Source: Phallusia mammillata
Lineage: Eukaryota
Length of the DNA stretch: 64,000 bases
Direction: 5' to 3'
NCBI GenBank assembly: GCA_965637545.1
Contig: OZ281500.1
Span: 8,246,001 to 8,310,000, forward strand
In this document: positions 20,542-62,860 of the stretch, one piece after another
Numbering within the stretch: the first letter of the stretch is position 1
Layout: every line of letters starts with the position of its first letter
Translations under genes and position numbers: made by a program
The notes under the pieces: generated by a model
The model's database searches: none
What the model was told of the DNA's origin: nothing
Seen by the model: the letters and a program-made list of their open reading frames with translations, nothing else

Positions 20542-21075
20542 TCACGCGTCTTGTATGAACGATTTTGCGTTCGCTTTAATTGTCAAACTTGATTGAGGTC
20601 TTGACCTCAGTAGTCCACCGATGTTGATCAGAATCTTTGAAACATTTTTTTGGCTTCGCAAAACACGGAATCCGAGTCGTTTCGAGATCGACTCAACAAT
20701 AACATCAGCCTTGCTCGGTGATGATGCGGCTCTCACCTTGCCGTTGCTTCTTAAAAACCATCTCTTGTTGCTGCCCGGAAACACGTACTCAAACGTGTAA
20801 CAGTCTTCATCGTGCGCACAGCCTTGTTCTCGAGTCCGGCAAATCCATTTTGCCTTATCTAGGTCCTTGTTTTGAACTGAGACAAGATCCACCTTACGCC
20901 AGAAGCCGGTCTTCCTTGGCACGGCGTAACGACCGCTGATTCGAATGTAGCATTCGTCATCTGCAGTTGTAGATCGTTTAACCAACGACGACAAATCACC
21001 TTTTAGTGAAGCAGCCGAGCACAAATGCTGGAGAATCAGAATAAGGACAAAACTTGTCCGTATAAATTTATTCAT
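20542..21075 (-). CDS. Unrecognised intronless secreted protein, copy A (177 aa from MNKF; signal peptide, LVKR site, 4 Cys in the mature part)
   Basis: Intact ORF with a hydrophobic N-terminus ending CSAAS. A close paralogue lies at 29258-29803 and keeps an open frame despite many substitutions. TATA-like box about 115 bp upstream. Confidence 0.85.
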   Translation of the reverse strand: MNKFIRTSFVLILILQHLCSAASLKGDLSSLVKRSTTADDECYIRISGRYAVPRKTGFWRKVDLVSVQNKDLDKAKWICRTREQGCAHDEDCYTFEYVFPGSNKRWFLRSNGKVRAASSPSKADVIVESISKRLGFRVLRSQKNVSKILINIGGLLRSRPQSSLTIKANAKSFIQDA

Positions 21076-21185
21076 TTTATCTCGCAATACAGAAAAAAAG
21101 TTTCACAGAATAAACAACTTGCTACAAGAAATGATGTTTCGACTAATGGTCAAATGATTGTGAGGTTTCAGTGTAGCCTGTGCCC

Positions 21186-21267
21186 TATTTAAACCCAGCA
21201 GGCTGCAAATTCCCCAAATAAAATTCAAGCGTGTTGCGTACCAATGCAAAACGTGGAAGGCGAAACC
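21186..21267 (-). promoter_or_regulatory. Promoter of copy A: TATA-like TTTAAATA, kappaB-like GGGGAATTTG, CCAAT and GGTTTCG motifs
   Basis: TATA-like 21186-21193, kappaB-like 21206-21215, CCAAT 21241-21245, CGAAACC 21261-21267. The same order recurs upstream of the pseudogene (22849-22936). Copy B (29908-29995) keeps the TATA, kappaB-like and GTTTCG motifs. Confidence 0.5.
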
Positions 21268-23023
21268 TCAGGTAGCTTGTACGTAGGATGAGTAATATAA
21301 GATTTTCCACGCAACCTGCGTGAGATGTTGGCCTTTACATTATTTCAAGTTACTGCTGATTTGTTTCAGTGCGTGATGAAGTTTTACTTCGCACCTCAAT
21401 GGTATCACCTAAAAATATCAGCTACTCGATCGTCATGGTGTTAAGTGGCCATTTTGCTCCAAGGAGTATAGTTTTGGAAATAAAGTGGATTTCCCCAAAA
21501 ACATTTATTGGAAATGCTCTGGACAGGTGGGTCTCCAAACTTTCTTTAACGGAGGACAACTTTTGTATAGTTGGAGGCTACGGGGCTCTCGTTTGGGGGC
21601 ATTCCCTATCAAGAAAATGTTATTTGTTGAGCGAAAATGGACAAACGGTTTCTTTGGAATGTGAACGGGGTTTATGATTGAAGCAGAGGTCAATATTACA
21701 AAAACATTTCACTAAATTGCTTATATTGGTCGGTTAAAGAGATGTAAAGACAAATTTTCCAATTTGCTGAAGGGGGTGTTCACTTTGATAATAATCACTG
21801 CATGGGTAAGGTAATCAGAGGCATTTTGAATATCGATTGACTTACTGTGTAAACAAATTGTCGGGGTCATTTGCTTTTGGTTTCCCCCGATTAACCTTTC
21901 GATTTAGATAAACACAAAATCCCAACGAAGAAGGCAATGGTTTCATGGAAAGGAGATTTAGATTAAATTTGATATTTGGTTTCCATTTTCGCTGCCTCTT
22001 TATTTTTTGCAACGCCCTTTTTAAATACATTATGTGATGTACGGAGTTTTTTCAGTGTCGTAGACAGCCAAAAATTTGATAGGGCAAAATACCTAAAACA
22101 AAGAAAAACACTTCGATTTATTTCCACAAATTGCAAAGTTATAAGCAAAAATAGGGAGCATGATTCCTTGACCACCCTAATGGCATTTGCTTAAATCTCT
22201 AATGGAAAACTTTTGAAGACAGTGTGTATGTATGTGTGTGTATGAAAATCTACTGTATAAAATCTTTCTTAATATTGCAGTAAACGTGACACAAATATTG
22301 TTTAAATTATTGCGTTGTAAAGGTTTTGTGTTTTTAATCAGTTGTATATCATTTTCTGTGCTTGGTACCTAAATATTGATTCCAAACTACTATCTCTTGA
22401 TAATTTTGTTGCATTTAACTGGTCCAATTGGACATTCTATTACAGATTTTGTCGCTACGTGCATTTATCATCCAGTGACAATAGGAGTACATATATGGAC
22501 ATGATTGAAAAGTACAATTTTGGGACGTTTTACAAATGCTAGGGGCTTTTTCAAAACACAAAAATGAATAAACATAGGGTTGTGACTGTAGCATAATTGT
22601 CTTTGGGGCCGCAAAATTTTGTCACCTTCAGGGAGTTTCCCTTACATGTATTTGTTAAACCAATTGGAAGGGGCGCACCCGTTGTTAGCAAGAGAAAAAA
22701 ACACAGCAGATCTGCCTTCTTCTGATTTTATCAAAGCACAACGACAAAATGTTGGTAACTTTGGGGTGATCTCCCTGTAGGTGGTAACTTCTTCCTCAGA
22801 TGGTGTGAAAAAACGTAACGTGTACTCATGGTACGTACATGTAAGTACGGTTTCGCCCACTGCGTTTCGTATTGGTATATACGTAACTCGTTTAATTTAT
22901 GTTTCGGGAATTTAAACTACTGCTGGATTAAAATACGACAGATGCGAATCACCAATTTTACAATCAATCGATCATCAGTCACAGCTTCATCCTTTGTAAT
23001 GGGTTCCTTTTTTGTAAAACAAA

Positions 23024-23406
23024 ATGCACAAATTGTTCTGGGCGCACTTCGCACTAATACTATTTTTCCAAGCATTGTGTATGACAGCTTCACTAAAAGA
23101 AGTTTTATCAACGCTAGTCAAACGATCCACAGCTACATTTGACAAATACTACATACAAATAGGTAGCCGTTGTATGTTCTAAACGTTTGCAGGCAGCACC
23201 AAGATATGGTTTCTAAAGAGCAACGGCAAGGTGAGAGCCGCATTGTCACCGGACAACGCTGATGTTGTTCGATCCCGAAACGAATCGGATTTCGACGAAT
23301 ATTTATGACGAATATTTTATTACACTTCGATGGACAACTGAGGCGAAGACCTCAATCAAGATTGACAATCAAAACGATTGCAGAATCGTTTATACAAGAC
23401 GTGTAA
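23024..23406 (+). pseudogene. Pseudogene of the secreted family (copy C), inverted relative to A and B
   Basis: MHKLFWAHFALILFFQALCMTASLKEVLSTLVKRSTATFDKYYIQIGSRCMF* (stop 23180-23182), then WFLKSNGKVRAALSPDNADVV, a frameshift, and LTIKTIAESFIQDV* ending at 23406. The central YAVPRK...DEDC block is deleted. Confidence 0.9.
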
Positions 23407-23989
23407 AATGGACCAAGCAGTTCTGCCAACACAAACCATATTTTTGTGGGAGATATGTATATACGTTTATGTTTTACCTAATTCTTCAATGTTATTTTTA
23501 TGCGACCATTAAGCTTTTGGTTATGGTACAAACGTCAGCAATTGTTTTAACGTTTTTGTTGAAAAAAATCTGTTTGCAGCAGGTCATGATTTTTATTAAT
23601 CTGCTATGTTTGTCAATAAACCTAAACAGTTTAATTTGTTGCATTTTTGCCAAAACAGCAATGGCGAATTGCAACATATCTTGCCTACTCCCGCCAAGTA
23701 AAAACGTAGTTACTCAACTGCGTTTGTTTACGACATTGTCACAAACGAATTCCTGTTTTCTCGCAGAAAACAAAACATTTACAATCAATTTGCAATGTGC
23801 ATTATCAATTTTTAAAATTTGTTACAAAATTTTCAGTTAATTTGAATTATACTCTTTTACCCTGTTTCGGTCACGACAATTGCAACTGGGCAGCTGAAGG
23901 GTTATTTACATCGCATTTGACAAAAGCAGCGTGATTGTATCGACTGATGCACATCCAACAAAATTACGTGTTTGTTAATTGAAACCAAA

Positions 23990-24325
23990 TCTGGGTATTA
24001 AGCGCTTTTTCGTTTTCGGTTGAACGACATGGGGATAGCACAGTTACTTCCAAGAACTATTTGTTTTAAATTTCACTATCTTAAGTTTTGCCTTTCCAAG
24101 CTTTGTACTTCCAACAAATAAACCTACAATTTGGTCCAGGTTGTCACGCTTAAGTCTGTCTGTTACCAACATGTCTGCATATTATTGGTATGATAAAATC
24201 AAACTTGTACAGTTAGACGAACACAAATTCATAACTGGGATCTGACCCGAAGCGTCTATGCACACCAGTGATGCTTGGAGAAAACGTATTGATTCGGTAT
24301 GCTGCCTCCAAAAGGTCTGACGTAC
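23990..24325 (-). pseudogene. Probable older relic of the same secreted family
   Basis: Collinear blocks in one frame: TFW, FLQASLVCIDAS (vs ILQAALCSTAS), YA, VGL, LGKAK, CY..VQP..KKR, with two in-frame stops and no ATG. A 20-nt DNA stretch matches copy C at 17/20. Confidence 0.4.
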
Positions 24326-24485
24326 TATAATCTTTGCAAGAAAGGCACTTTTACTATATAGGATGACTTATACAATTTTTAAGTCAAAACTTCATTAGGC
24401 CGTTTGTGTTACCAAAAATATCCATTGGTAAAAATGTCAATTCTTTTCGAAACATTTCTTAACTGTGAAAAATTTACATTAGAGG

Positions 24486-25605
24486 TAGGGTTGGGCATTT
24501 GACCGGTCAAGTAAAATCTGGTCAATTGACCGGTCAAATACTTGTCAAATTGGTCAAATATCGGTCAAATACTATACACACTAATAAATCGCATGTTTAG
24601 TTAAAAGTTAGAAGTTTAATCTTCTGCTAAACCTAAAGTAATGGAAATGAAGGTTTCAACTCATGTAAATTTGTTTGTGAAATAGGAAATGTTCAGTTTA
24701 TATTATATTACAGACTTTTCCGACTGCATTGCATGCTTCATTTCATCAATGGCCCCACCTGTACATCTGTATTTTCATTCAGTAATCATATTTGTGAACT
24801 GGATTCTCATAATATTCTATATACATCAGATTAAAGTCTAATTTTGACTGAGATTTAACTGCAAAACTCGCTTATCCTGCTTAAAATCGTAATTTATGCT
24901 GTTAAGCTGTTGTCACATCTCCATTTATGACAAAAAAGGAATATACAAAAGCTTGATATGTACGTACTTTATCCCAATAAGTACTGACCTGTAACTTATC
25001 CACAAAAATCTATTCTTGGCAATTATAAGCTAAATATATAGCTTACAATTTTTTTGGATCAACTATAGAAAAAAGGACTGTAGACCTACAAGTTTACACA
25101 GATGCTTTAAATTATATACTTATATTTTTTATCTGTCAGTAAAAATGTGCAGCATTTGCTAAAATGTCCTAGTAAATACTAATGAACTATCTTCCCTCAT
25201 GGACCTATCACACCCGATTTTTATTAAGATAAAACGGTGCTAGAAGTGATCCAAGTTTTTTAATTGCATTGTAAACCTTGCAAAGTTTGCCATAACAGAA
25301 ATCAGATCTTAATTTCAAGTGAAAAGTATCTCCTAATTGTTATGGGATTTATTTTGAATGAACAAAACACATCTACATTGGCTTAAAAAGCACTTGTTAA
25401 TACAAAAGTATGTCCTAAACTGTTCTACCTGAGGGTTATTAGAAATAAATTACCATTTTCAACAACCAAAAAGCAAGTCCAAGAAAATTTACCACATTTG
25501 ATTTTTAAAATTAAAAATAGTATTTGACCGGTTAAATAAAGTGCTGTCAATTGACCGGTCAATTGACCGTATTTGACCGGTCAATTGACCGGCTTGCCAA
25601 CCCTA
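24486..25605. mobile_element. Non-autonomous hAT element, 1120 bp
   Basis: TIR TAGGGTTGG / CCAACCCTA. Perfect 8-bp TSD ATTAGAGG (24478-24485, 25606-25613). Subterminal palindromes TGACCGGTCA at 24500, 24527, 25552 and 25574. No long ORF. Confidence 0.92.
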
Positions 25606-28600
25606 ATTAGAGGTAGACGGGTCAGTTTATACTTTCAAACTTTAAGTTTATCTGCACACTCTTTTTCAACACCGCCGTGATGTTAAGACATCCTCTATTG
25701 GTTTTCACTCTGTTGGATTCAAATTATTATTATCACTTTAGTCCCAACAAGTTTTAGAAAGTTTTTTTGTGGTTTGCTTTTTGGTGCTCGTTATATGGAT
25801 GACGTCAGTTCTGTTCTTGTTAATCTGTTTTCTTTTTATAAAGTACTTGAACTGTTACGACAATCCACGTTAACAAAGGATTTGAATGACCACTTTATTT
25901 GGTGTGTTCGAACCTAGATACGGATTAGCATTTTTATTTCTGGTCACTTTGTATTGATGGTCTTTTTTAGAAACTGCCCCAAATTCCCCAGTGAACTGAA
26001 CATGAAGGTTTCCGTCACAAACATCTATTTTAAATGCGTTTTGTGCAATATTAGCATGAATTAACAAGATGCGGTATGTCGTCATCAGTGTTGAGAACAA
26101 GGCCGTGTGCAATATGATAATTTGTTAATTTCAACCAAACCTAGACCAGATCGAAGTGACCATTAATCAATCAGTTCTTAAAAATTCGCCCTTTGTATTT
26201 TGAAATGCTGACGAAATGCAAAATCAAGTACCGTTCGACCCATACTAAAATATAAGCTCAACGAATGAATGTGGTGGATGTTTATTCAAGAATTATTACT
26301 CTGTAAGATTTATTTCATTCGTCAATTCCTACATTTAAAAAAAATCATAACGTTTTTGCATGCGGTGCGTCGCCAAGCGCTAGAATTGCTATTTTTAGAA
26401 AAGTGAACAACGCAAAGATGTTACATCACATCATGGTCCGATAGTGGGACGTCGAAACGTACGCAAAAATACACAGGTCGTGCAGGAGTGCTATACCGTA
26501 AATTGGTATTATGTGTGACAGAAAAAGCAATGTGGCCCATGTTATCCGTTTGTGGGCATTTAAACTATAACTACAGTTGGTTTATTTGAAATGGAATGAC
26601 TAATTTAGGCACTTCCTTTAATTTTTAGTAGCAAGACCCATAAATTTAATAAATCTTTAAATCGCAAACAAATGTTTTTTTTAATCGACGGTGATTTATA
26701 TTTAGTTTTAAAGATGAAAAATTCATTTGATGCTAGCAGCAAATCGCAGAAAAATATACGTAGTTGTTGGAAAATGACGTAATCGCTGGAATATGACGTA
26801 GTGAATGGAAAGTTTCGCACCGTTTTATTTTCTATGCAAATGTTCTTCATAGAAAGTTTGCAAATAGGTCGCTTCAAGACGCCTGATTAAAATCTACACC
26901 ACAATAATAAATGTCATGTTATTCCTTTTTTGCCGCTTTCAGATTTTTTGGTAATAAATTTGTGCTGGCTTGTCGGTTATGTCGTGAATCAGATACTTCA
27001 ACCTAAACGATATTTAGTTAGACCTCGAATTTATCAACAAAGTTTTCCACTACTGATGTCATATCTAAAAAAGTCATTTTTTTCTAAACATAATACCTGG
27101 TTTAATTCGTTTTCGCTTGGTGGCGAATAACATGCAAAAAAATATTAACGCTTTACCTAAAGTCGAAACTTAAAAGTGGGAAACCTACCTTATGTCACCT
27201 ATCAAATCAAGTAGTGACAACACACGCAATGCTTAAGTTTATGATGCTAAATATAACTTCTCTCGTCAGTGCGCGCGAACATTGGGCTACTGGAAACAAC
27301 GTGAGATTAGCAATGCAAAACTTTCACACCATTTGCATAGAAAAGTAGCACCACATGGGTAACCACCTTTGATAACTGTTGCTTTACGTTTGTTTGCAGT
27401 GATCAAGTTTTTATTTTCATACCTGATGTCATTTTGGAATAGCAGATTCCACTGCTTGGTTAACAAACTAAAGTATCTTAGCTTGGAAATGAACGATCAC
27501 GAGCGCACAAATTGGAAAACGTTTCTAAACGGACAAACGTGTAACGACAATGTGCGTTAAATAAAAACGGCCCTCTATTTTTACATACTTTTTATTTTAA
27601 AGTTTGTACTCCTAAAAATAAGTTAACTGTTTTTAATCTTATGTTAAAAGTTAAATAGTAGCGGGAAATTGCTAAGCATTTTTCTTTGAAATGTTTTGAC
27701 AAACATAGAACAAAATAAAAAATGGAACAAGTTTTTGAAAACTTACAAAAGTTTTTCAAAAGTTTTTTTTAATTTCTTAGTTCATCACCCCCGTTGCATC
27801 GTTGAAAACTCCTGCAGGGGTATTTTTGAGAAATGGAGTAGCAAAGGCGGAACTGGGAAATTACGTTCCTCAAAATTAATTGGAAAAAAATCTTGCGTTT
27901 TCCAGATAAGTTAGAGAAGAAGCAATTTACCATTGCGACAAGCTTTAGGTTTCGAAACATTATGCCCAACCGACTTTTAGTTTAATTGAACATATATTTG
28001 TTTTAAACCTTGTAGATCAGGGTTAGGCAATCGGTTTGAAAAGGATCACATAAAAAACAGAATATACGGTGGAGAGTCGGGTCATATAGGTCATTAAATT
28101 ATCATAAGTTTATTTTAAAAACGAAAACCTTGAATAGCGATGTTTTGCTGACAAATAACAAGTGTACATGTTAAAACTAAACAATTCAAATGTGACGTTT
28201 CTTTACAAAAACGTCGTTTATTATTTGATCAAACTCCTTCAACCAATTTTTTGGCGTATAAGGTAGCCGCCTTCTGTTTTGGCACAACTTTATCTGTAAA
28301 GAAGTTAATTTCACCCTACATAATACCTGGCCATGTTGCCAGGGTTCAATTGTATGACTTAAAGTCACAAACAAATGCTTTGTATATTTTATCAATGTGA
28401 ATATTTCGGTATAATATGTCAATGCCATTAAAAATAACCATTATAACAATATACCAGCCAGAAAACATGTATTGCATGTATAAATAGGCTACAATGTACG
28501 ATTTAAAGTTTTGACATTTTCGATTGAAACAAAATAGCGATAGTTAAACCGTTTTTATAAATGTGTTTAATACATCTCAGACAATCTAATTTTGATTAAG

Positions 28601-29257
28601 CTATTTTAATAAATCAGTGTCTAGCGCTTCTAAGTATAAAATTTAACCACTTCAAACGACAAATTTATTTACAACGCCCTCTTGTCTTATGCATTTTTTG
28701 TTGCGAAATAGAAAACTTTCCCCAACTTGGATGAGCAGGAAACAAAATCTTAATTTAAATGTGCATTTGTCATAATACCTGACGGCAGTAACAAGCAAAG
28801 ACTTATTAAATCTGATTAGATACGTTTTATTTATAAAATTTCAGTTGGCTGTCCCGAAAATTGCATAATCTTCCTTTGTAACCATTGAAATATTTCGCCT
28901 TAATAACATGTAATACTTCATGGTTTATGCTTTTACGGTACCTCGTTGGAATCTTTTTCGATCGCCCTGATTATGATTCAACTGGACAACAAAGCTTGAG
29001 CTTTAATAATTTATTTAAAAAAGGAATAAATCAGCATTCAGTAGCAGATACAACAGAAACAACCTGCAGCAATGGGAACGACAAAAAGCATTATGGACAC
29101 AACGACTGCTCACGATTGTACTATCATAACAAGCAGCATGTGCCGCATAAGCATAACGTTAATAAAAAATTTGTAGGAAAAATAAATAAATATCTCTGAG
29201 AAATATAAAAAGTGCAAAGAATAAAAACGGAAGGTTGTCAGAAGAAGATGATACAAT

Positions 29258-29803
29258 TTAAACGTCTTGAATAAATGATTCCGCGATCGGTTTAATCGTC
29301 AAACCCGATGGAGGACTCGGCGTTAGCAGACCGCGGTCATTTATCAAAATGTTCGACGTGTCGGTTTTGCTGCGCAGAACTCGAAATCCGAGTAGTTTCG
29401 GGATCGACTCGACAATAACATCAGCCATGTCCGGTGATGATGCGGCTCTCACCTTACCGTTGCTTCTTAAAAACCATCTCCTGTTGCTTCCCGGAAACAC
29501 ATACTCAAAAGTGTAACAATCTTCATCGTAGGCACAGCCTTGTTCTCGAGTCCGGCAAATCCATTTTGCCTTTTCTAAGTCCTTGTTTTGAACTGAGACA
29601 AGATCCACCTTACGCCAGAAGCCGGTCTTCCTTGGCACGGCGTAACGACCGCCGATTTTTATGTAGCATTCGTCGTCTGTAGTTGTGGATCGTTTGACTA
29701 GCGTTGATAAAACTCCTCTGATTGAGGCTGTCGAACACAGCGCTGCTTGGAGAATCAGAATAAATGCAATGTTTGCCCAGAATACAATTGTAAATTTGTT
29801 CAT
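29258..29803 (-). CDS. Unrecognised intronless secreted protein, copy B (181 aa)
   Basis: Intact ORF, signal peptide, LVKR site. The core RYAVP...AASSP differs from copy A at only 3 residues. TATA box ATATAAAT about 110 bp upstream. Confidence 0.87.
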   Translation of the reverse strand: MNKFTIVFWANIAFILILQAALCSTASIRGVLSTLVKRSTTTDDECYIKIGGRYAVPRKTGFWRKVDLVSVQNKDLEKAKWICRTREQGCAYDEDCYTFEYVFPGSNRRWFLRSNGKVRAASSPDMADVIVESIPKLLGFRVLRSKTDTSNILINDRGLLTPSPPSGLTIKPIAESFIQDV

Positions 29804-32800
29804 TTCGTCTCACAATAGCTAAAGCTGCACAGATAAAAATATGAATCTGAGATGATGCTTGGTTGGTGAACGAACGCTTCTGATATTATCCACTCCCGCC
29901 AGTGGCTTATTTATATCAAACTGACCAACTTTCCCGGTACCGAATTAGGTGCGTTGAGTAATCACGCACAACGCAGCAGAGAGGCAAGCGAAACTTAGGT
30001 ATAGCTGTTCAAGCTTATTGTACGCATTTTGCACCACGTGTCTATGACAACACCACTAGGGTAACCACCACAGGTAAATCGAATGATTCTGTATTATTTG
30101 AGTTCTGTTTTGCACTCGAGGTAACTGACTACTCAATTTCATGCCTGCACAGCCAAAGCTTTACAACTTTACATACGCCTTGCCTGGAGTAATTTACCCG
30201 CTAACTTAATTGTCAGGGCAGCGACCCGTACTTGCTTTTTCCCTGCACTTTTCCCGCTTGTGCCATGCCCAAAGTAATCGTTACAAATTGTGTTACAGGC
30301 ACCTGGGGGTGATTCGAATTGCGAAAGCATTGCGCGCTATAGGCTTTTCCGGTTTGCAACTACACACGAGCCCAGCAGTACTGCTTCTTCGTTGGCTGTT
30401 GCAGCAGTCAGCGCAACCCTAGTTTCGCAACAGGTGGATTTGACATTTAAGGAAATAGGTAATTTCATTGCTATCGAAAAGAGTTTGAATAGTTAAGTCA
30501 AGGTCGTTGACTTTAGGATGAATATTGTTAAGCATCAGACATTTTTTTTTTAAATTATTATTATTATTTGATTACACAGGCAAAGCAGTAGGTTAAAGCT
30601 ATTCTTAGACGAGTAAAGCAAAGAGTCCGAAAAAATATTTTTTATTTATTACGCGACTTTGATACGTAAAAATCATGCACGTGGAATAGGTCCACCGGCG
30701 GATGCGCCAACAAAAATAGACTATTACGTGCTCTGTGCACATACGCTGCGCTACGTATTGCTGAATCACATCTCTTTACCTGGCTGCTAACTTCTAACTA
30801 CAAACTCATGACGCAGCAAAAGGTAACCTTCGCATATAAGGCGTCTTTTCCACGCAGTCGAACATGCAGGTTTTGCGTAAACTTTAACAAAACTTGGTTT
30901 CACGTTTGATCAACAACAGGAATAGAAACGCGGAAAACACCCTATCGGGCAATTAATCGTGTCTTAATCGCATCCAGGGATCCTGTTGAAGGCAATCACG
31001 CCGCGGGTGCTCACTGCACTCGACTAGTGTCCTTCGACACTCGCGCCGTCTTGTTGTGACCTAGGCCCTGTAGCGCGCGCACGGAACTTGTGCAATGCAA
31101 TGAATGTGCACTTTTGGTTATCGGGCGCGAGAATGATTATGTTTCGCGGCATGCCAACGACTCGCGACAATGCTACGCCAGCGGAGAATGCTAGCATTCC
31201 CATTCGCCACGCGCCGTAGTGTAAGGAATGATCAGGCTGTTCTATATCGTAGCGCCTTACATATTTAGCGCCTTACGGCATGAGGCGACGCCATCGACTG
31301 ACATTCTCCGACTTCTCGGCGTACTTTATACCCAACTTATTAAGCAACAACATTGCAACGGCATTACCCATTCTAGAGCCCTAGTCTGCTCTTTACGTAA
31401 TCGCAACAATTTACGACGTGACGTCTCTTGTATTTACTCGATGTCAATTCTTTGTCTAAAAATTTATATCTATATAAGTCGCAATATATATATATATATA
31501 CTCTTTGTGTACTACGATACGTGATCTATAGCATTGTCCTTGAGCTAATAGGTGACGCATCAATTGCGAATCAAACGCGTTAGTTCGATTTACGTGCCAT
31601 GTCATTCGTTACTGCATTCAAACACGTGTCTGAATCGCTTTTTAAGTAAGAGATCGTGCGTAGATCGAAAAAAACGTTTTTGACTCTGCAAGCTATTTTC
31701 AAGACTCGATCGCCCAAAAATAGTTTACAGGAATCCTATTTAAACCATGTAGATAATTTAAGATGCAAGTTTGTCGAGATAACATTTTTAACCACAGACG
31801 TATTTTCGGTATTCATTTTTAGGTAAATTGCTTTAAAGCCGTTCGGACGCAATCAACAAAGACGTCATATAAGGTATTGCAAAAGCAATCATGAAAACAC
31901 ATCAGACAACGAACAGCCAATTGGAGTTTCTATGAGGCTGATAATAGATTGCCATCAGACAATTGTATCGGCCAAAATGTTTTTCGCCAGATACCCAAAG
32001 CTCCCGACATGGAGTGTTGCAAATGCGATTTTTGTTAAATTTCGTAGTTTGCATTAAGTTTAGTTCAGTTCAGCGACACAAAGTCACCCAAGATTTTGCA
32101 TTTGTTGAGCCAACTGTGTAGCCACGCCTACAGGTTACGTCACGAAAATTGACTCATGCCCACGTGGTATTGCGACGTGTTTTAGCCCAGGGTGGAAATG
32201 TCAGGTTTTTATCATTTGCAAAACGCATTTGTGAATCTAGCTACCTTGTCTGTCGCATAAACCAGTAACAGGTTTCAGGCGGTTGAACGCTGCCAACTCG
32301 GCAAAGTATTTTTGGTTGGCTGATACCTATTTTTGACGCGCCGAAGTAATTGTGGCCCTCGAACTCAACGCATTCCGGGAAAGTAAATGCAGCATGTTTG
32401 TTTCCCATCGAGTTGTACAAAATTCGCAACATTTCTAAGCAAAACCACGTCACGAAAAGCGAAAACGGAACAAACGTATATTTTGGGATTTGTTTGACGT
32501 ATTTCCGACATTCACGTAACACCCGAAAGCAATTGGCGAAAATCAACAGTCTGCCATCGCAGAAAAATGGGGCTATGTATAACATTCGCACGTCGGGGAC
32601 TCCACCTTTTGTCAACTTGTTGCCAAATGTAATTGCCGCTGATTTATTGCTGTCTCCAAATAGTTAACGCCCAACGCTTTAACATTACTTTTTATGAGAC
32701 TGTGTAATCACTGTTCTGTGCAATCAAGCACATGTGAGAAGTACGGGTTTTATTGTAATAGTTAATTATTAACCTCAGTGACGAGAAACTCGTGGTTAAA

Positions 32801-44500: not shown

Positions 44501-47500
44501 ATCATAATATTAAAAACGGCCTGCCTGGAAAATTAGTATAATTGAACATCTGAATTGTTTAATCGAACCAAGAAACATGACTAAACAATTGATCACCTGA
44601 TCAGATCAATGACAACCTCTCGAGCCGAGTTTCGAACGTATTCTGATCCGACTTTGATCACATGATCTCCGGGCAAAAGTTTTCCCTGAGACGGTCCACC
44701 TGCAAAAAAAACGATATTTAATACAACGTCGGTTACAAGTTTTCTATCAGCAAAAACTTACAATTCTATTTTTTCTGCACCGGTACATAAATATCTACTC
44801 GTTATATCTTCCTTTTTCATTCAGATTTTAAACAAAATTCGCCGACAACTTTAGCAATTGCTGTTTGCATCAGTGTACAATACAAATCCCATGTAGTCAT
44901 TTTTTAGGTGTTTGTTTAAGGCGGTAAATATTTAACGTGTTGATACAAGGCAATCAAATGGAAAGGCCACTTCTTAAGAATTGATTTTCGCGTGGCTGTG
45001 AATCATCACCCAATAAGGCGAGTGCAACATGCATGATACAACCAGGAGTGACAGGGAAATTACCCCATAAAACTTGCAGGAGAGAACATAATACAGGTAT
45101 TGCGGGATTTTTAATCAAGTGGAAAATCGATTTTCGTCTATGTAGCTGTGAACGCAAGCTGAAACAAAACCCAAAATGACACCGAAAGGAGCCGCGGCGT
45201 TAGCTTTTACAATCGTCTCTTTTCGGCCAGTTAATTGGATCATGTGTGAACGTCGCTCTGAGTGCATCGCGTTGTATTTTCATCAGGGAGGTTACAATTA
45301 ATTATTTTCGGGTGCCGCGCGAAATCAATAGGGTCAGTGCAGCGCTCTAACCAGGAAGTACGCTAGTCCGATCGTATATGCTTACCAGGTGAAACGGAGC
45401 GAATGATCACTGGCTTTTCGCTCCCGGCGATGAAACCGAATCCAAGCCGATGGTGTCGACCGATTGTATACTTGCGAGGTGCAGGCGGTTCGTGGTCACT
45501 AGATGTCGAGCTTGAGTCTGTTTCGCCGTCACCGTTGACGCGGTCGCTCCTCGGGTCGTCGTAAGTCACTTGTTGCAGGACGTGGCTGCGAATAGTATTC
45601 AAGTATTAGATGTTTAACATTAAAATTAGGAACTAATGGGTGACAATGCAGAAAAAATGACATATACGCCCAAAAGGGGGTAAAATTTGTACCATGCTAA
45701 TACCCAGCCAAACCACAACATATAATTCGCCGAGACGTTTTTTAGAGAAATGCCGTTTTTATCCTCTATCCTTTTCTTGATTAAAAAACAAATCCTAAAC
45801 TAAAAGTAACACCCAAATGCACATTTCTAAAAGAATGCAGTTAATCTAACCAAGTTTAGCACAAAATGGAAATTGAGAGAAGTGAAACTTCTAACATACA
45901 TTTATAGTTGACACCACATACCGTACAAAAGATATGAAAGAGGAACACTGTTTGTTATAGCAACGCAAACCCATTCGGTGTCTTTTTAATTGTTAAAGTT
46001 TCCAGATTGCAGTTTGCACAAGAAAAAGTTGACCCGTTCCTTCTTTATAACCCGTCATCAAGAATTCAACGTCATATATGCAACTTTTCGCTTTATTGTT
46101 GCGCTTTTACTCTGCCCGAAAATGTCAAGAAAATTACAATAGATGGACAACACATGAAAACCCGTCTTTGTGACCTGGTCATTCTTGAATAAAACGCTTT
46201 TTCACAAGGATTTGTAACCACTGAAGCGTGAAGCTGAACAACAGGACTCAAAAAGGGGTGACATTTTTCACCCGATTCGTCAACAAGTGCCCGATTACAA
46301 GCGCTTGTGTTATGAAAAAATCCCCGTTTCTTATCGGGCGGTGTTATAATTTTAGAACATGTGTTATAACACAGCCCGATTTTATCGGCAAGGGTAGTGA
46401 AGCAATAAATTTATTTTTTATTGAAAAATATTATATTTTCTTTGGAAATAATCGCAGGTGAAATGGGTTTTACATGAAATTGGCAGTTAAATGTGAACTG
46501 TTGTGACAAAAGCAAACGCATTTTAAGCAGTGAAATAGCAGCAGTACCAGATTCTCCTCGATTGTAAACTGTAAAATACAAAATGGGCCAAGGTTGTTGT
46601 ATCTAATAGGCATCCATGTTCTGATAACAAATGGAGTAATGAAAAGTGACAGTTCAGGGTGGGGGAAGCATTTCTAGTGCTTTATGAAGCAAACTAGGGC
46701 CTAACACACTATCAAATGAAGGAATTGGGACATTGGATTTAAAAAGCAATGATACATGTGGTAAGTGGTTGTCAATTGTCATGATATGCTTGTCATTCTC
46801 AACTGTTTCTATTATTTTAGCAGATGGTAATTTGTTATCTTTTTAGGCATGTTTAAAAATATGGTAGCTCATCTCTAGTGTGATCCTGGTTTTGTAAAAC
46901 ATTGGCTTTCTATCTACTGGCCTAACTCAAGCATTTTTGTGTAAACTCCTACTTGTCAAATTAAATGTTGCATACACTTTTTCTTTTATTTTTTGTTGCA
47001 GTTCAACATCTGGAAATCTGAATAGAAGCAGAAAAAAGCAGCAGAATCATTCCAAAGGTAATTCAAGATTGCCTTGGACAACATGGAAGAAAGTAATTGA
47101 TGGTGGAAGAATGGTGTGGGTGAAATGAGCTCTCTGAAGTGTCAGCTAAATCATTGATGCATACAAAATGCTTCTTGCCTCACTTGCAGGGGAACATTTT
47201 ATTTTAAGATATTCACCACACACTTCAGTTTTACATGAATCAAATCGAAATATGTGTGTTTTTTGCCAATGTACTACCCGAAGGCAGGTTTATTTAACAA
47301 TTCTTGTGCCCAATTTAAAGCAAACTTGTTATGTTAGATGTGTTCAATGATTTGTTGGTGTTATTTTAATCTCGTACCCAAATTAAGGCAAACTTGTTGT
47401 GTTGGTTAGATGTGTTTAAACATTTGTTGGTATTAACGCTGTCTTATCTACATGACATAATCATGGCGTCGTTAAAAAAGCATCTTTTGGATAAATATTT

Positions 47501-50500
47501 ATACATTTTCACTTTGATGTAGACTCTTTCAGTAAAAGTGATTCATTAGACAGGAATGAAAAACTATTATTTTTGACCAGTAATCGCTATGATAGCTTGT
47601 TTGCCAGGATTGTTTGATACAACCTCATCTTTCACATGGTAGCTTGTTTAATTTTATTTCAGTAACTCGCAACACATTGCATTTTCAGCTGTACAATGTT
47701 GTTTCACCTTTTTTGTTTCTCAGTCTGTTTACTTGATGACCCCTTTTCAGTGTACTCATTGTAAATGCAGGTTTTTGCTTGATAAATCAATCTTCTAATT
47801 ATTTATCCTCTTCACATTTATTTCTTCTTTCATATAACTGTGGCACCCAATATGAGTATGTTATTGTGTGGAAATTGGGTTTATGAGGTGCTTCATTTTT
47901 TTCATTAATAAAATGTTGCCCTTAACTGTGCGTTTGTTATTTTATCATTTTAAGTGCTAGTCTTAACTGGTTTAAAATCACAAAGGGCTTGATGTAAACA
48001 AAAACGGTTTTCACAGGTCAACTCTAAACTACATCTAGTAAACGCATAAAAAATATCTTTAGAATCTAACCACCACATGATAAATGAGAGGCGTACATCA
48101 TAAGCGAATGAAGGGCATGACCGCTTAAAAATGATTTTTCGCGCTGACGACCCTTGTAGAATATACAGGCTCCAGATCACAAACGGATTAAGATAAATGA
48201 AAACGGTTTTCACAGGTCAACTCTAAAATACATCTAGTANNNNNNNNNNNNNNNNNNNNNNNNNNNNNNNNNNNNNNNNNNNNNNNNNNNNNNNNNNNNN
48301 NNNNNNNNNNNNNNNNNNNNNNNNNNNNNNNNNNNNNNNNNNNNNNNNNNNNNNNNNNNNNNNNNNNNNNNNNNNNNNNNNNNNNNNNNNNNNNNNNNNN
48401 NNNNNNNNNNNNNNNNNNNNNNNNNNNNNNNNNNNNNNNAATGAAAATGTTTTTCACAGGTCAACTCTAAAATACATCTAATAAACACATACCTAATATC
48501 TTTAGAATCTAACCACCATATCATAAATGAAAGGCGTACATCATAAGCGAACGAAGGGCATGACCGCTTTAAAATGAATTTTCGCGCTGACGACCCTTGT
48601 AGCATATACAGGCTCCAGATCACAAACGGTTAAAGGTAAATGAAAATGTTTTTCACAGGTCAACTCTAAAATACATCTAGTAAACACATACCAAATATCT
48701 TTATCTTATAAGAAGAACATCAAAAACAAGAGGCGTACATCATAAGCGAGCACAGGGCACGACCGCTAGTGCTGTCGATTTCATGTAGGCCTATAGCATG
48801 TAAATTTCTTGTAGCGTGTAGTATATACAATCTCAACGTAGAGTGATGATGAGCGCCTCTTGATTTTAGGGTAATGATAGGAATTGATTGATATTTTGCA
48901 TGCGTTCACTCGACGTAGGTCTAGTTTAAAGTTAACCTGCGAAAAACGTTTTCAATACTTTATGTCGTTTGTATTCTGGAGCCTGTAGCCTACATGCTGC
49001 TGAGTCGACAGCGCATAAAATTATTTTAAAGCGGTCATGCCCTTCGTTCGCTTATGATGTACGCCTCTCATTTATGATGTGGTGGTTAGATTCTAAAGAT
49101 ATTTGGTATGTGTTTATTAGATGTATTTTAGAGTTGACCTGTGAAAACCGTTTTTGTTTACCTTAAACCGTTTGTGATCTGGAGCCTGTATATGCTGCAA
49201 AGGTCGTCTGCCCATAAAATGATTTTAAAGCGGTCATGCCCTTCGTTCGCTTATGATGTACGCCTCTCATTTATGATATGGTGGTTAGATTCTAAAGATA
49301 TTAGGTATGTGTTTATTAGATGTATTTTAGAGTTGACCTGTGAAAAACATTTTCATTTATCTTAATCCGTTTGTGATCTGGAGCCTGTATATTCTACAAG
49401 GGTCGTCAGCGCAAAAAATCATTTTTAAGCGGCCATGCCCTTCGTTCGCTTATGATGTACGCCTCTCATTTATGATGTGGTGGTTAGATTCTAAAGATAT
49501 TTGGTATGTGTTTACTAGATGTATTTTAGAGTTGACCTGTGAAAACCGTTTTCATTTAACTTAATCCGTTTGTGATCTGGAGCCTGTATATTCTACAAGG
49601 GTCGTCAGCGCAAAAAATCATTTTAAAGCGGTCATGCCCTTCGTTCGCTTATGATGTACGCCTCTCATTTATGATATGGTGGTTAGATTCTAAAGATATT
49701 TTTTATGCGTTTACTAGATGTATTTTAGAGTTGACCTGTGAAAACCGTTTTTATTTAACTTAAACCGCTTGTGATCTGGAGCCTGTATATGCTACAAGGG
49801 TCGTCAGCGCAAAAAATCATTTTTAAGCGGTCATGCCCTTCGTTCGCTTATGATGTACGCCTCTCATTTATCATGTGGTGGTTAGATTCTAAAGATATTT
49901 TTTATGCGTTTACTAGATGTAGTTTAGAGTTGACCTGTGAAAACCGTTTTTGTTTACATCAAGCCCTTTGTGATTTTGAACCAGTTAAGACTAGCACTTA
50001 AAATGATAAAATAACAAAAGCACAGTTAAGGGCAACATTTTATGAATGAAAAAAAAAATGAAGCACCTCATAAACCCAATTTCCACACAATAACATACTC
50101 ATATTGGGTGCCACAGTTATATGAAAGAAGAAATAAATGTGAAGAGGATAAATAATTAGAAGATTGATTTATCAAGCAAAAACCTGCATTTACAATGAGT
50201 ACACTGAAAAGGGGTCATCAAGTAAACAGACTGAGAAACAAAAAAGGTGAAACAACATTGTACAGCTGAAAATGCAATGTGTTGCGAGTTACTGAAATAA
50301 AATTAAACAAGCTACCATGTGAAAGATGAGGTTGTATCAAACAATCCTGGCAAACAAGCTATCATAGCGATTACTGGTCAAAAATAATAGTTTTTCATTC
50401 CTGTCTAATGAATCACTTTTACTGAAAGAGTCTACATCAAAGTGAAAATGTATAAATATTTATCCAAAAGATGCTTTTTTAACGACGCCATGATTATGTC

Positions 50501-53500
50501 ATGTAGATAAGACAGCGTTAATATCAACAAATGTTTAAACACATCTAACCAACACAACAAGTTTGCCTTAATTTGGGTAAGAGATTAAAATAATACCAAC
50601 AAATCATTGAACACATCTAACATAACAAGTTTGCTTTAAATTGGGCACAAGAATTGTTAAATAAACCTGCCTTCGGGTAGTACATTGGCAAAAAACACAC
50701 ATATTTCGATTTGATTCATGTAAAACTGAAGTGTGTGGTGAATATCTTAAAATAAAATGTTCCCCTGCAAGTGAGGCAAGAAGCATTTTGTATGCATCAA
50801 TGATTTAGCTGACACTTCAGAGAGCTCATTTCACCCACACCATTCTTCCACCATCAATTACTTTCTTCCATGTAGTCCAAGGCAATCTTGAATTACCTTT
50901 GAAATGATTCTGCTGATTTTTTCTGCTTCTATTCAGTTTCCAGATGTTGAACTGCAACAAAAAATAAAAGAAAAAGTGTATGCAACATTTAATTTGACAA
51001 GTAGGAGTTTACACAAAAATGCTTGAGTTAGGCCAGTAGATAGAAAGCCAATGTTTTACAAAACCAGGATCACACTAGAGATGAGCTACCATATTTTTAA
51101 ACATGCCTAAAAAGATAACAAATTACCATCTGCTAAAATAATAGAAACAGTTGAGAATGACAAGCATATCATGACAATTGACAACCACTTACCATGTATC
51201 ATTGCTTTTTAAATCCAATGTCCCAAGTCCTTCATTTGATAGTGTGTTAGGCCCTAGTTTGCTTCATGAAGCACTAGAAATGCTTCCCCCACCCTGAACT
51301 GTCACTTTTCATTACTCCATTTGTTATCAGAACATGGATGCCTATTAGATGCTATTTCACTGCTTAAAATACGTTTGCTTTTGTCACAACAGTTCACATT
51401 TAACTGCCAATTTCATGTAAAACCCATTTCACCTGCGATTATTTCCAAAGAAAATATAATATTTTTCAATAAAAAATAAATTTATTGCTTCACTACCCTT
51501 GCCGATAAAATCGGGCTGTGTTATAACACATGTTCTAAAATTATAACACCGCCCGATAAGAAACGGGGATTTTTTCATAACACAAGCGCTTTTAATCGGG
51601 CACTTGTTGACGAATCGGGTGCATTTTTTGCGAGACAAGCGGTTGTCACGCATCAGCAGTTACCACTGTTTTTGTGCCTTGTCTGCACAAAGCAAGCCTT
51701 TGAAGCGGAAAATTAAATATTGCAAATGCACCTTGTAAACCAACCTTTGTGGAGTTAAGATTCCACAGAAACACAGGCGCATTTAACACATTGTGCTACC
51801 TAAAACATTTTTATTGACAAAATGCTTTTGTGACTAGGACCAATGTGAGGTATATATGCTTTCAAATTTAAATTTAACAGTTTAAGCCACTGTTTCTTGA
51901 CCAAACAGTACTAACAAACTCGCTTTAAACAGAAGAAAAAACGAAGGAAAAAATGCACACCAAATATTAGGGATTTTCGCATTGATTTCAGTAACCTCTT
52001 TAAGTTGCATAGACACAAACAAGGGTAGGTAGATTTTTACTGCTAGTTCGTGGAATAGGGCAGGGGTCCGCAAATAGTGGGTCGCGAGACCTTCCAGTCT
52101 GGGTCGCGAAATATTTTAAGTTTCCCATGAATATTCTACAGTATTAATGAATTTCGGCTTTTTTCAACCTTTTAATCATTATTGCATTGTTACGTATGAC
52201 TACGTAACTGTGCCATACAGTCTATGTAACAATGCAAAAATTTAAGCGCACCTAAGCAAGCATGCGTTTTGTGATTAGCTGTGTTCTCAACACATAGCCC
52301 ACAGTTCTCATTTGTTAGGATAAATACGTTCGTTTACCTACTGTGAAAACAGCAACTGACAATAGCATTATAGCCGTCTTAATATTGATATTTAGTTGCT
52401 TAGTATTTTCCACAAACTTACATGCTAACAAAATGCTTGGGTCGCGATAATTTAGAGCAATTTTTTTAGGGTGGCGCCAAAAAGTATTTGCGGACCCCTG
52501 GAATAGGGTAAACACCGATTTGTGTTGTTGACCACCACATTTCGATTTTCGTAACAAGTGAGTAGTGACTAAGCTACCTGGTAATAACCACAACGAATAT
52601 TTTACTTGTTTGTTAGATTGTTTGAGTCACTGCGGTTGCGGGCACGGTGCCAAAGTGTGTTAATTTTAAACATGGACAAAAGGCAGATGACCTTGGATTT
52701 GGCTGTTTAAGTTGTTAATGTTAAACCTTGCTATAGGATACTTTTTCGGCGTGACCTGTTAAACATTTTTATGGGAAGAAATATGTCTTTGGCTCAACAA
52801 ACCGAAAAGTAGCCAAGTAAAAGAACATATCCCTTTAACGCTTTAACAGACGCAAGTAAAACGTATCGTAGGTATAACGTTTGTATGCAGTGATAATTTC
52901 GGTGGGCTACAGTTAAAAACGCAACATTTATGGAGTGTTTTCAGAAAAAAAACATTAAATGGTGTTTCACGCCTTCCTCGATCAATTTCCACAAACTAAC
53001 ATTAAAAATGCCACCCGTGCTTCTATAGATTTTCTTCTTTGTCATGTGTTTATGCAGGGGTGTATTTACGCACATTCTATAAGTCAAGCGAAACCAACTT
53101 GCAAATCCCGAGAAACTGAGGAAAGCAGATAAGAAAAGTCACACTTTTTCGCGGTTGACTTCTCTGGCAGCCTGGGTTTGCTGCGTTGGGAGATCTATCA
53201 AGTGCAGCTGAAGTCACGCGGAACGATAAACAGGCCCAACCGCAGTGACTGTTTTTCTGGTGCCGTAAACGTGTGACCTATACCTGAATGGACGTGAGTT
53301 TTTGGAACTAAACCTAAAAGACTGAATTAATTAAGGAAAAAAACAAACATCATATGAATCATCCCTTGAGTAAAAGCAACTTTTGACAGCGGGTGCTTCG
53401 TTTGAACATTGAAAATATCTCCAAGAGTCGGTTTCAACTAACATAACATTTTCAGTAATTTGGTTAATGAGGATTTTTTTGCGTTTTCTTCTTTTAAGGC

Positions 53501-58199: not shown

Positions 58200-59086
58200 C
58201 TTGGTCTGTTCAACAAGTCTATATTGTTAACTTTTGACTCAAGCAAAAAAAAATTTTTGCAAAAATTAAACTTACTTGCTTAGAACACCTGTCCTTGCAG
58301 AGCCAAGACCATATGTATATCCATGTAGCTACAACATTTCACAATCACAAGAACATTCAACTAGCTATTTGTTATAAACTAACTATAAGTTCCCAAAATA
58401 AACATGTGTTTATCGTGCATTTGCGCATTACATCTTTCTGCATGCTTAAATCAAACTGAAGCGCATCCTATAACTGTGTATTCCACAGTAGGCTAGTCTA
58501 CAGCGTGCATGTCATGTCTCAACTAACATAAGTATTTAGCCAGAGACAATGCTATTCTCTGAGGCACACAAGAAGCCAGAAAAATGATTTAACGGGCAAG
58601 CGAATGCCAATGCCTACTTTAGAAAAAGCGCCCCGCTTCGATCACTTGGCTGCGTTTGTGCCGAAAGAAAAGCAGTGCGACACAAATCAGCCCTTTGTCG
58701 TCGCCTGGCGGCAATTTGTTCAATTTAAGTTAATTTTGCATGTTAGCAAAATATGTCATTACAAATCACAATGTATTTTCGCTACATGTAAGCAAAAACG
58801 CCAGGCGTTCCAGATTATATTTTGACAAGTTGATTGGAAAACATATAGGCCTTCCGCACTGGTTCTCCTCAAGCGAAAATGTTTTCAATATAGTTTTATT
58901 AAAATTTGTTCTGAACTTAAACTTATTCATTTACATGTACTATCGTTTAGTTTACTATGGGTAATTTATTGAAGAAAACAAAGCTGAAAATAAAATAATA
59001 CAGAAAACAAAATTAAAAAAAATATAGTTTCCAATCGTTGTGAAATAACATAATCACGCAAGTCAGCGGTGCGGAACGGTGTGTGG

Positions 59087-59096
59087 CCTCTTTCTC
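59087..59096 (+). promoter_or_regulatory. TCT/5'TOP start motif of RPL14
   Basis: Pyrimidine tract CCTCTTTCTC about 30 bp upstream of the ATG, typical of ribosomal-protein transcription starts. Confidence 0.7.
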
Positions 59097-59118
59097 GATC
59101 GCCGTGCTAAAAGGCAAG

Positions 59119-59532
59119 ATGGTGTACAAAAAGTTTGTCGAAATTGGCTCCGTGGTCTACATCAGCCAAGGGCCACAGGCAGGAAAGTTGGCAGCTATTG
59201 TCAACGTCATCGACCAAAACCGCCTTTTAGTGGATGGGCCGTGTAACAACGTCCCGCGATGCGTGGTCAATTTGAAAAATGTTCACTTGACCAAATTTCG
59301 CATAGACCTGAAATGGGGTTCCCGAACCAGTACAGTAAAGAAGGCTTGGGAGACGTCAAATGTGAATGAAAGTTGGGCGGACAGCAACTGGTGCAAGAAG
59401 ATTCAAGCAAAGGCAAGGAAAGCCCAGCTCACCGACTTTGATCGCTTCAAGTTAATGAAGTTGAAGCAAAAGCGAAGACGCATCATTGCCAGTGAGCTTA
59501 ACAAGATGAAAAAGGCGGCAAAGGCATCTTAA
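59119..59532 (+). CDS. RPL14: 60S ribosomal protein L14 (eL14), intronless, 137 aa
   Basis: MVYKKFVEIGSVVYISQGPQAGKLAAIVNVIDQNRLLVDGP...LTDFDRFKLMKLKQKR. AATAAA at 59546. Confidence 0.97.
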   Translation: MVYKKFVEIGSVVYISQGPQAGKLAAIVNVIDQNRLLVDGPCNNVPRCVVNLKNVHLTKFRIDLKWGSRTSTVKKAWETSNVNESWADSNWCKKIQAKARKAQLTDFDRFKLMKLKQKRRRIIASELNKMKKAAKAS

Positions 59533-61723: not shown

Positions 61724-62860
61724 ATGGGAATACTTGGTTTATCAAAGTTGATTTTTGACAAAGCTCCATCAGCAGTAAAGGAAAACAGCATTAAAAACTA
61801 TTTCGGTCGAAAGGTGGCCATTGATGCCTCTATGGCAGTATACCAATTCCTCATTGCAATTAGACAAGATGGAAATCAGCTGACAAATGATGAAGGTGAA
61901 GTCACCAGCCACATTGCAGGTTTATTTTATCGCACCATCAGGCTTCTTGAAAATGGCATAAAACCAGTCTTTGTTTTTGATGGTAAGCCACCTCAAATGA
62001 AGTCTGGTGAACTAGCTAAGAGAGCAGAAAGAAGAGAAGAAGCTGAAAAGCAACTGGCGAAAGCACAAGAAACTGGTGAAAGTCAAGATGTTGAAAAATT
62101 CTCAAGAAGACTTGTCAAGGTCACCAAAGAACATATGTTCGATTGCAAAAAGCTTCTTCGCCTAATGGGTGTCCCTGTAGTTGAGGCACCAACAGAGGCA
62201 GAAGCACAGTGTGCTACTTTAGTCAAATCAGGCAAAGTTTATGCCACAGCTACTGAGGATATGGATGCACTTACTTTTCACTCTAACCGACTGCTGAGAC
62301 ATATGACCTTTAGTGAAGCAAGGAAAATGCCAATTCAAGAGTTTGTGTATGATCGTGTTCTATCAGAAATGGAGTTTACACATGAACAGTTTGTTGACCT
62401 GTGTATTTTACTAGGATGTGACTATTGCGAACATATTCGTGGAATTGGACCCAAAAGGGCTTTCGATTTGTTGAAGCAACACAAAAGCATAGAGAAGATC
62501 CTACAGTCCATTGATACAAAGAAGTACACTGTGCCAGAAGACTGGGTGTACAAAGAAGCAAGACAGCTTTTTCTTCAGCCTGATGTATCTGAAGCGAGTA
62601 ACGTTGAATTAAAATGGACTGAACCAGATGTTGAGGGGATTGTAAAGTTTATGGTTGAGGAGAAAGGATTCAATGAAGATCGCATCCGAAATGGCATTAA
62701 GAAAATCGAAAAGAGTCGGCAAACTAGTACACAAGGCCGCCTTGATGATTTCTTTAAAGTTATGCCATCTACACCAAAAACCAAAAGAAAATCAGATACC
62801 AAAATAAAGTCGGAGTCAGCAAAGAAAAAAGCCAAAACCTCATTTAAACGAGGAAAGTAA
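61724..62860 (+). CDS. FEN1: Flap endonuclease 1, single coding exon, 378 aa
   Basis: [59 protein letters not shown] and the PIP box QGRLDDFF. Acidic catalytic residues are intact. Confidence 0.99.

Follow-up and report, generated by a model that had tools for sequence, protein, structure and literature searches.

We analysed a stretch of 64,000 nucleotides from Phallusia mammillata (contig OZ281500.1, positions 8,246,001 to 8,310,000 of the forward strand; hereafter the window), in which an earlier reading of the letters alone, here called the original prediction, had proposed a small cluster of genes for an orphan family of secreted proteins. All positions are given in window coordinates, and the locus corresponds to C7:8.266-8.276 Mb in the genome. 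The list of open reading frames (ORFs) contains two intact ORFs on the minus strand, each of 181 codons (20542-21087 and 29258-29803), which we refer to as gene A and gene B, respectively. The frame of gene A opens with TTG and its coding sequence is counted from the first ATG (Table 1). Both ORFs are uninterrupted and the genes consist of a single exon, as the original prediction had it, and their products share 77% of residues (E 1e-100). Compared as DNA, the two loci are 81% identical over 555 nt, a match that comprises the coding sequence only and leaves the flanks without any. No further copies were found in the whole 240-Mb assembly beyond A, B and one pseudogene. On balance, we favour the view that a lineage-restricted family is represented here by the tandem paralogues A and B, each encoding a classically secreted protein of ~16 kDa.

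A secreted protein family known from three organisms

Relatives of A and B were sought with single sequences and profiles in word-indexed searches of 5.8 billion clustered proteins and with exhaustive phmmer searches of 1.84 billion representatives, and these returned only two proteins, P0001 and P0002. P0001 (179 aa, 52% identical) is encoded on contig L007 of a second, related species. Since L007 is colinear with the window from position 31246 to 29162 and this match is unique in the source genome, we assign P0001 as the orthologue of gene B. The organism of P0002, the third in the set, is present in four metagenome contigs that are mutually 99% identical, and a search of metagenome contigs yielded three loci, all from this same organism at 99% nucleotide identity and in single copy. 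Its true ORF (L010:7965-8489) encodes 175 aa with ~29% identity to A and B, and the protein shares their length and Cys pattern and has an RR-S site; at the C-terminus it carries IQTV, where the other members have IQDV or IQDA (IQxV). In all three organisms the ORF is uninterrupted. As judged from sequence similarity, the family is known from three organisms only, namely the source genome and the two others. No relative was found among viral contigs, and there is therefore no sign of a viral origin. When A, B, P0001 and the third-organism protein were compared with Pfam at E<=10, no families were retrieved, phmmer and profile searches of the PDB gave nothing relevant (one match, to dehydroascorbate reductase, had E 0.71), and Rfam returned no family for the whole window. 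The original prediction had likewise not recognised the family.

The proteins begin with MNK, followed by a hydrophobic stretch (mean hydropathy 1.8-2.6 over 15 residues) and an A-x-S sequence. Behind this signal peptide lies a conserved segment of 11 residues (I/L-R/K-G-x-L-x-x-L-V-K-R), which reads LKGDLSSLVKR in gene A, IRGVLSTLVKR in gene B and MSGAIRHLMARR in the distant relative; its consensus is hydrophobic-[RKS]-G-x-hydrophobic-x-x-L-[VM]-[KA]-R with a dibasic KR or RR at the end. The mature part that follows comprises 143 aa (~16.2 kDa) with four Cys in both A and B, where LVKR is directly followed by S, and it has an isoelectric point (pI) of 10.0 in A and 8.9 in B, three of the four family members falling into the range of 8.9-10.0. 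The KR-S or RR-S sequence is invariant in the four genes and the pseudogene, and the four Cys together with many core residues are kept in all four proteins. The signal peptide, the LVKR site and a mature part of about 143-145 aa had all been anticipated, and the hydrophobic N-terminus, LVKR-S and the 143 residues bear this out.

The third member of the cluster at the locus is a pseudogene in inverted orientation relative to A. The family hidden Markov model (HMM) matched it in three pieces, 23018-23179 (HMM positions 2-53, E 2e-11), 23183-23305 (103-131, E 4e-8) and 23263-23403 (134-180, E 4e-4), which are split by a stop codon at 23180-23182 and by frame changes. Nucleotide alignment revealed that ~140 nt are gone (codons ~55-101), that two further deletions of 7 nt and 12 nt have occurred, and that the first Cys codon is lost. 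The homology between the pseudogene and gene A continues into the flanks, over ~200 nt on the upstream side and 27 nt on the downstream side, and for this reason we regard the pseudogene as an inverted DNA duplicate. A retrocopy origin was rejected, because ~200 nt of promoter were copied along with it. One clear pseudogene had been proposed and stands, as does the broader picture of orphan secreted proteins whose genes form a small tandem cluster that includes a dead copy. The likely relic that had been listed as a fourth member is not supported: the one candidate found (22418-22621, minus strand) scores at chance level, with E 0.7-5 in tblastn and E 81 against the family HMM.

Comparison of A with B gave a ratio of non-synonymous to synonymous divergence (dN/dS, omega) of 0.21 at a dS of 0.58. 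Taken separately, the signal/pro, core and C-terminal parts each have an omega of ~0.2, and no positive selection was seen in any of these three; in comparisons with the other species, synonymous sites are saturated. By these codon-level measures, A and B are under purifying selection. Divergence is unevenly spread along the pair. A core of 311 nt contains 23 differences, compared with 72 in the 223 nt outside it (permutation p<0.0005), and dS at the ends is 1.2-1.4, compared with 0.22 in the core (Fisher p 4e-6). The diverged parts are the signal/pro region and the C-terminal third. The core was probably homogenised by gene conversion. The contrast between core and ends, together with flanks that cannot be aligned, points to an old duplication that was followed by conversion of the core. 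At the unconverted ends, B is nearer to P0001 than A is (dN 0.35 versus 0.47 in the signal/pro region and 0.65 versus 0.81 in the C-terminal part), in agreement with the synteny described above. We conclude that the cluster has undergone modest birth and death combined with concerted evolution under constraint. The description of these genes as rapidly turning over was overstated, given a dN/dS of ~0.2 in every part and a homogenised core.

Transcription, upstream regions and neighbourhood

Within 27000-32000, the contigs of three RNA-like sequencing runs (X6, X7 and X9) lay only on gene B and its short untranslated ends, and they were colinear with the DNA; a DNA run used for comparison covers all of this interval. 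Of the words sampled from gene A, 26% also occur in one of the three RNA-like runs. Depth is low, and numerous further RNA-like runs from this species contain none of this sequence, which suggests restricted expression. The "RNA" label of the runs is a guess of the tool, which weighs against transcription. The family is probably transcribed and, taking selection, relatives and transcription together, genes A and B are real. The X7 contig (29253-29688) carries gene-A states at six scattered positions of the core (L137R, Y92H, E77D and three silent changes), and represents either an allele that arose from A-to-B conversion or an assembly (de Bruijn) chimera of the two transcripts.

Upstream of both genes, a TATA-type box is located just over 100 nt before the ATG. 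An alignment of the 250 nt upstream of A, B, the pseudogene and P0001 revealed common blocks, namely GTTTCGC, a TGATTACGCAAC-like block, a GGGRAWTTT-like block that is degenerate in B, and the TATA box; the 250-nt promoters thus include GGGRAWTTT-like and TTACGCAA-like blocks. Read by eye against consensus motifs, these blocks may be bZIP/C-EBP-like and kappaB-like sites, which we treat as a lead only. Each copy has its own TATA promoter, with blocks that are kept between paralogues and between species. These blocks have outlasted all other similarity in the flanks, and the promoter would be easy to test in ascidian embryos.

Further upstream of gene B lies a block of ~300 nt that is unique in the source genome and matches L007:1-295 at 73% identity, or at 83% when columns of a MAFFT alignment are counted. 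It contains ATTGCATTGCACAAG and GATTAATTGCCC runs, and neither an Rfam match nor an RNA-like contig was found over it. Because its indels are not multiples of three and its conservation is without frame preference, we read this block, which begins 1.1 kb and ends 1.4 kb from gene B, as a probable enhancer or other conserved non-coding element.

Table 1. Features of the window, in window coordinates.
Feature	Position	Strand	Remarks
Gene A coding sequence	20545-21075	minus	177 aa from first ATG at 21075; stop codon 20542-20544
Gene B coding sequence	29261-29803	minus	181 aa; stop codon 29258-29260
Gene B transcript, minimum extent	29197-29824	minus	contigs of RNA-like runs X6, X7, X9; no intron seen
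Core conversion tract (probable)	B 29385-29695, A 20669-20979	minus	92.6% identical versus 67.7% in rest of coding sequence
Pseudogene	23018-23403	plus	family HMM, nucleotide alignment
Gene B TATA box	29906-29915	minus	TATAAATAAG; 103-112 nt before ATG
Gene B conserved promoter blocks	29926-29964	minus	bZIP-like (putative) TGATTACTCAAC 29953-29964; GGGAAAGTTG 29926-29935; shared with gene A, pseudogene and P0001 locus
Gene A promoter	21185-21249	minus	TATA-like TTTAAATAG 21185-21193; GGGGAATTTG 21206-21215; TTGCATTGGTACGCAAC 21233-21249
Probable conserved non-coding element	30947-31246		~300 nt
Segment with terminal repeats	24493-25568		~1.07 kb
Open frame of 1208 codons	35584-39207	minus	
Run of 200 N	48240-48439		within foldback 46269-51621
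Ribosomal protein L14e	59083-59529	plus	one uninterrupted ORF
FEN1-type flap endonuclease	61724-62857	plus	XPG_N and XPG_I; 378 aa, complete, one uninterrupted ORF

Several other features of the window were recorded. Between the pseudogene and gene B lies a segment with 50-nt terminal repeats made of the palindrome TTGACCGGTCAA, which looks like a small insertion resembling a miniature inverted-repeat transposable element (MITE). The open frame of 1208 codons has no match in Pfam and encodes an acidic, Ser/Pro-rich sequence of low complexity, which suggests a disordered protein with a single giant exon here. The frame is marked by a local AT skew of -0.2. The uninterrupted ORFs for the FEN1-type endonuclease and for L14e are explained either by a neighbourhood with few introns or by retrocopying of both genes. 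The run of N is an assembly gap or a mask.

Fold and possible function

The original prediction had divided the mature protein by eye into three pseudo-repeats and had proposed a beta-trefoil fold. In a language-model search, the nearest clusters to the gene B protein were RicinB_lectin_2 ("16 kDa salivary peptide", 0.91), CdtC, CdtA, CBM13, clitocypin and CCL2-like proteins, all of which are beta-trefoils, and P0001 retrieved these clusters again at 0.92, its recognition value of 2325 being above the threshold of the tool. AlphaFold2 run on an alignment of the four sequences returned an all-beta model with strands at residues 6-12, 15-22, 27-33, 43-46, 60-64, 71-76, 91-96, 102-105, 114-118 and 121-125 and a helix at 35-40. 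A 4+4+4 trefoil should have 12 strands, and 10 of them are predicted, at the places where they had been marked by eye. Foldseek found no match to this model at E<=0.001; among the 50 rows listed, most, including the best, are beta-trefoils (SeviL, IL-1beta, HA33, FGF2, RSA, fascin, IP3R and CCL2). In an exhaustive VIA-align comparison, ~40 of the best 50 matches were beta-trefoils, FGFs, clitocypin and CGL being among the trefoils from these two comparisons, and a structure search of the Atlas gave template modelling (TM) scores of 0.40-0.44, with RicinB_lectin_2 rows included.

Several observations weigh against this assignment. The language-model tool gives scores near 0.9 by chance for 4-10% of shuffled proteins, and it found no usable match for the third-organism protein. 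The AlphaFold2 model is of low confidence, with a predicted local distance difference test (pLDDT) score of 52 and a predicted TM score (pTM) of 0.52, and with P0001 as the target the result was worse (pLDDT 44.5, pTM 0.38) and was not used for the fold search. The sequence and profile searches of Pfam and the PDB described above were blank even at their permissive cut-off, and no match to PF00652 or PF14200 was obtained. The (QxW)x3 motif was not found: by eye, in alignment A2, only AKW of unit 1 is invariant, and the other units have ADVI and ESFI. Comparison of the three segments by hhalign detected no internal threefold repeat, and Smith-Waterman shuffles of unit 1 against unit 2 reached p 0.05-0.07, in A and B only, which is not significant. 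Many true trefoils also fail such an internal-repeat test. The predicted strands do follow the 4+4+4 layout, but the proposed pseudo-repeats themselves are not statistically detectable.

The strongest alternative is that the protein is secreted and all-beta with a fold other than the trefoil, and that the trefoil signal is an artefact of prediction from a shallow alignment and of language-model bias. Model confidence (pLDDT 52 and 44), the lack of a significant structural match, the silent language-model search with the third-organism protein and the extent of the structural matches, which span model residues 1 to ~110 only, all fit this explanation. Against it, two different learned methods and two family members arrive at the same fold class, and both the size of ~143 aa and the 4+4+4 strand layout suit a trefoil. 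We consider a non-trefoil fold unlikely and a beta-trefoil likely. The proposed beta-trefoil is the best reading of weak structural and language-model evidence.

For a trefoil of this kind, the following sequence of events can be proposed. The signal peptide would be cut after the conserved A-x-S. The 11-residue propeptide ending in KR or RR might then be cut in the secretory pathway by a convertase of the furin or proprotein convertase (PC) type, to which we give about an even chance. Convertase processing is favoured because the dibasic site survives ~70% sequence divergence, over which the four Cys also persist. It is disfavoured by the absence of an Arg at P4, and further dibasic pairs occur inside the domain, so that KR alone is no proof of cleavage. 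The released product would be an all-beta domain of 143 aa, likely a beta-trefoil of the ricin-B-like or lectin-like kind, in which the four invariant Cys could form two disulfides. By analogy with other small secreted trefoils, it may bind a glycan or protein ligand outside the cell via its loops.

With regard to function, the feature-space neighbours include no cluster of IL-1 or FGF proteins, and we therefore place the family in the lectin/inhibitor branch of the trefoils rather than among the cytokines. Our preferred guess, at a little under even odds, is a role in lectin-like recognition or defence. The hints of an immune role are the promoter motifs read by eye and nothing else. Overall, A and B belong to an undescribed and lineage-restricted family whose secreted proteins are probably lectin-like beta-trefoils.

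Two other functions were considered, and we regard each as improbable. The first is the inhibition of foreign or endogenous proteases by a secreted beta-trefoil similar in kind to clitocypin, cospin or Kunitz-STI. The Inhibitor_I48 and Inhibitor_I66 clusters are indeed among the feature-space neighbours, yet all such scores lie within 1 Z unit of those for lectins and cytokines and are tied with them, sequence searches matched none of the inhibitor families, and the quality of the model is too low for a reactive-loop motif to be read.

The second is that of a cytokine-like ligand, a conventionally secreted trefoil that is activated by a convertase, signals via a surface receptor and in ascidians would stand in for IL-1 or for a divergent FGF; the original prediction had pointed to both families. 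IL-1beta, IL-36gamma, IL-33 and many FGFs do occur among the weak structural matches, the FEY/LEY sequence and the WFL..NGK stretch resemble IL-1 and FGF strands by eye, and the promoters contain the GGGRAWTTT-like and bZIP-like blocks, likewise read by eye only. Sequence searches speak against this ligand. The IL1 family of Pfam (PF00340) gave no match at E<=10 for the four members, and in a genome scan nothing passed the cut-off and nothing was found at the locus. The same scan with FGF (PF00167) found six canonical, multi-exon loci, on C1, C2, C4, C5 (two) and at C7:20.33 Mb, but none at C7:8.266-8.276 Mb, and the proteins were without a match at E<=10. No cytokines occur among the feature-space neighbours, which comprise lectins, toxin-binding subunits and inhibitors. 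Among the leaderless IL-1 proteins there are two secreted exceptions, IL-1Ra and lamprey IL-1.1.

A 2026 study of invertebrate IL-1 describes a trefoil with [F/L]ES in strand 9 that is encoded by three to five trefoil exons with conserved phases, and that usually has an N-terminal PDZ domain and no signal peptide (PMC13736523). In A and B, FEY/LEY occupies residues 61-63 of the 143 in the mature part and belongs to predicted strand 5 instead of strand 9, and the genes are intronless, encode a signal peptide and lack a PDZ domain. Structure-guided searches in the same study found no IL-1 candidates in three tunicate genomes (PMC13736523), and together with the empty Pfam IL1 scan of the source genome this would leave the niche free for such a ligand. 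The kinship with IL-1 that had been suggested is not supported by PF00340 or by motif position, gene structure and leader, nor is that with FGF by PF00167, whose six loci lie elsewhere, or by the motif spacing, which does not fit the FGF signature. We conclude that membership in either family fails and that a cytokine-like mode of action is without positive support.

"IL-1-like" activities were reported from tunicate haemolymph in the 1990s, and the family might be their molecular identity if it were the tunicate stand-in for IL-1, a convertase-activated secreted trefoil cytokine switched on via the kappaB-like and C/EBP-like blocks, a proposal that we regard as highly improbable.

Pfam, sequence searches of the PDB and searches of billions of proteins all miss the family, although it shows conservation and purifying selection and is probably transcribed. 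For a model group of chordates, it offers a clear case of a secreted gene family with a taxonomically restricted distribution. The A/B pair is in addition a compact case of concerted evolution, with a converted core between diverged ends. If the trefoil fold and a lectin-like activity were true, it would be a new sequence family among the trefoil lectins of marine invertebrates; receptor signalling, if true, would bear on the question of why tunicates are without a recognisable IL-1.

Comparison with known trefoil families

The IL-1 superfamily, including IL-1anc (PMC13736523), shares with A and B the probable beta-trefoil and an F/L-E-x strand followed by P..W-aromatic-L. It differs in having three to five exons, the motif in strand 9 and, in place of a signal peptide and KR site, a PDZ domain, a leaderless start and processing by caspase or calpain, while the A/B family is intronless, has the motif in strand 5 and is not matched by PF00340. 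FGFs are likewise secreted trefoils, share C..FE...WFL..NGK by eye and recall the basic pI of three of the four family members; the A/B locus differs in its lack of a PF00167 match, in motif spacing and in being intronless.

The fungal trefoil inhibitors (clitocypin, macrocypin, cospin and cocaprin) provide the top row of the VIA-align comparison and are found among the feature-space neighbours, but there is no sequence similarity to A and B, for which an inhibitor activity is putative. The fungal proteins are not known to have a signal peptide or disulfides.

Closest are the R-type lectins and their kin, comprising RicinB_lectin_2, the mosquito 16-kDa salivary CWRC peptides, CdtA/CdtC and the marine lectins SeviL and CGL. 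The A/B family differs from them in that PF00652 and PF14200 do not match, in that neither a clear threefold QxW nor a significant repeat is seen, with sugar binding being putative, and in that it carries a conserved dibasic propeptide. Like A and B, R-type lectins are small, secreted all-beta proteins of ~140-160 aa that often form lineage-specific tandem families, and they have a short helix before the K-W (QxW-like) strand of the first unit. They are the nearest language-model neighbours of the family and are among its best, if weak, structural matches.

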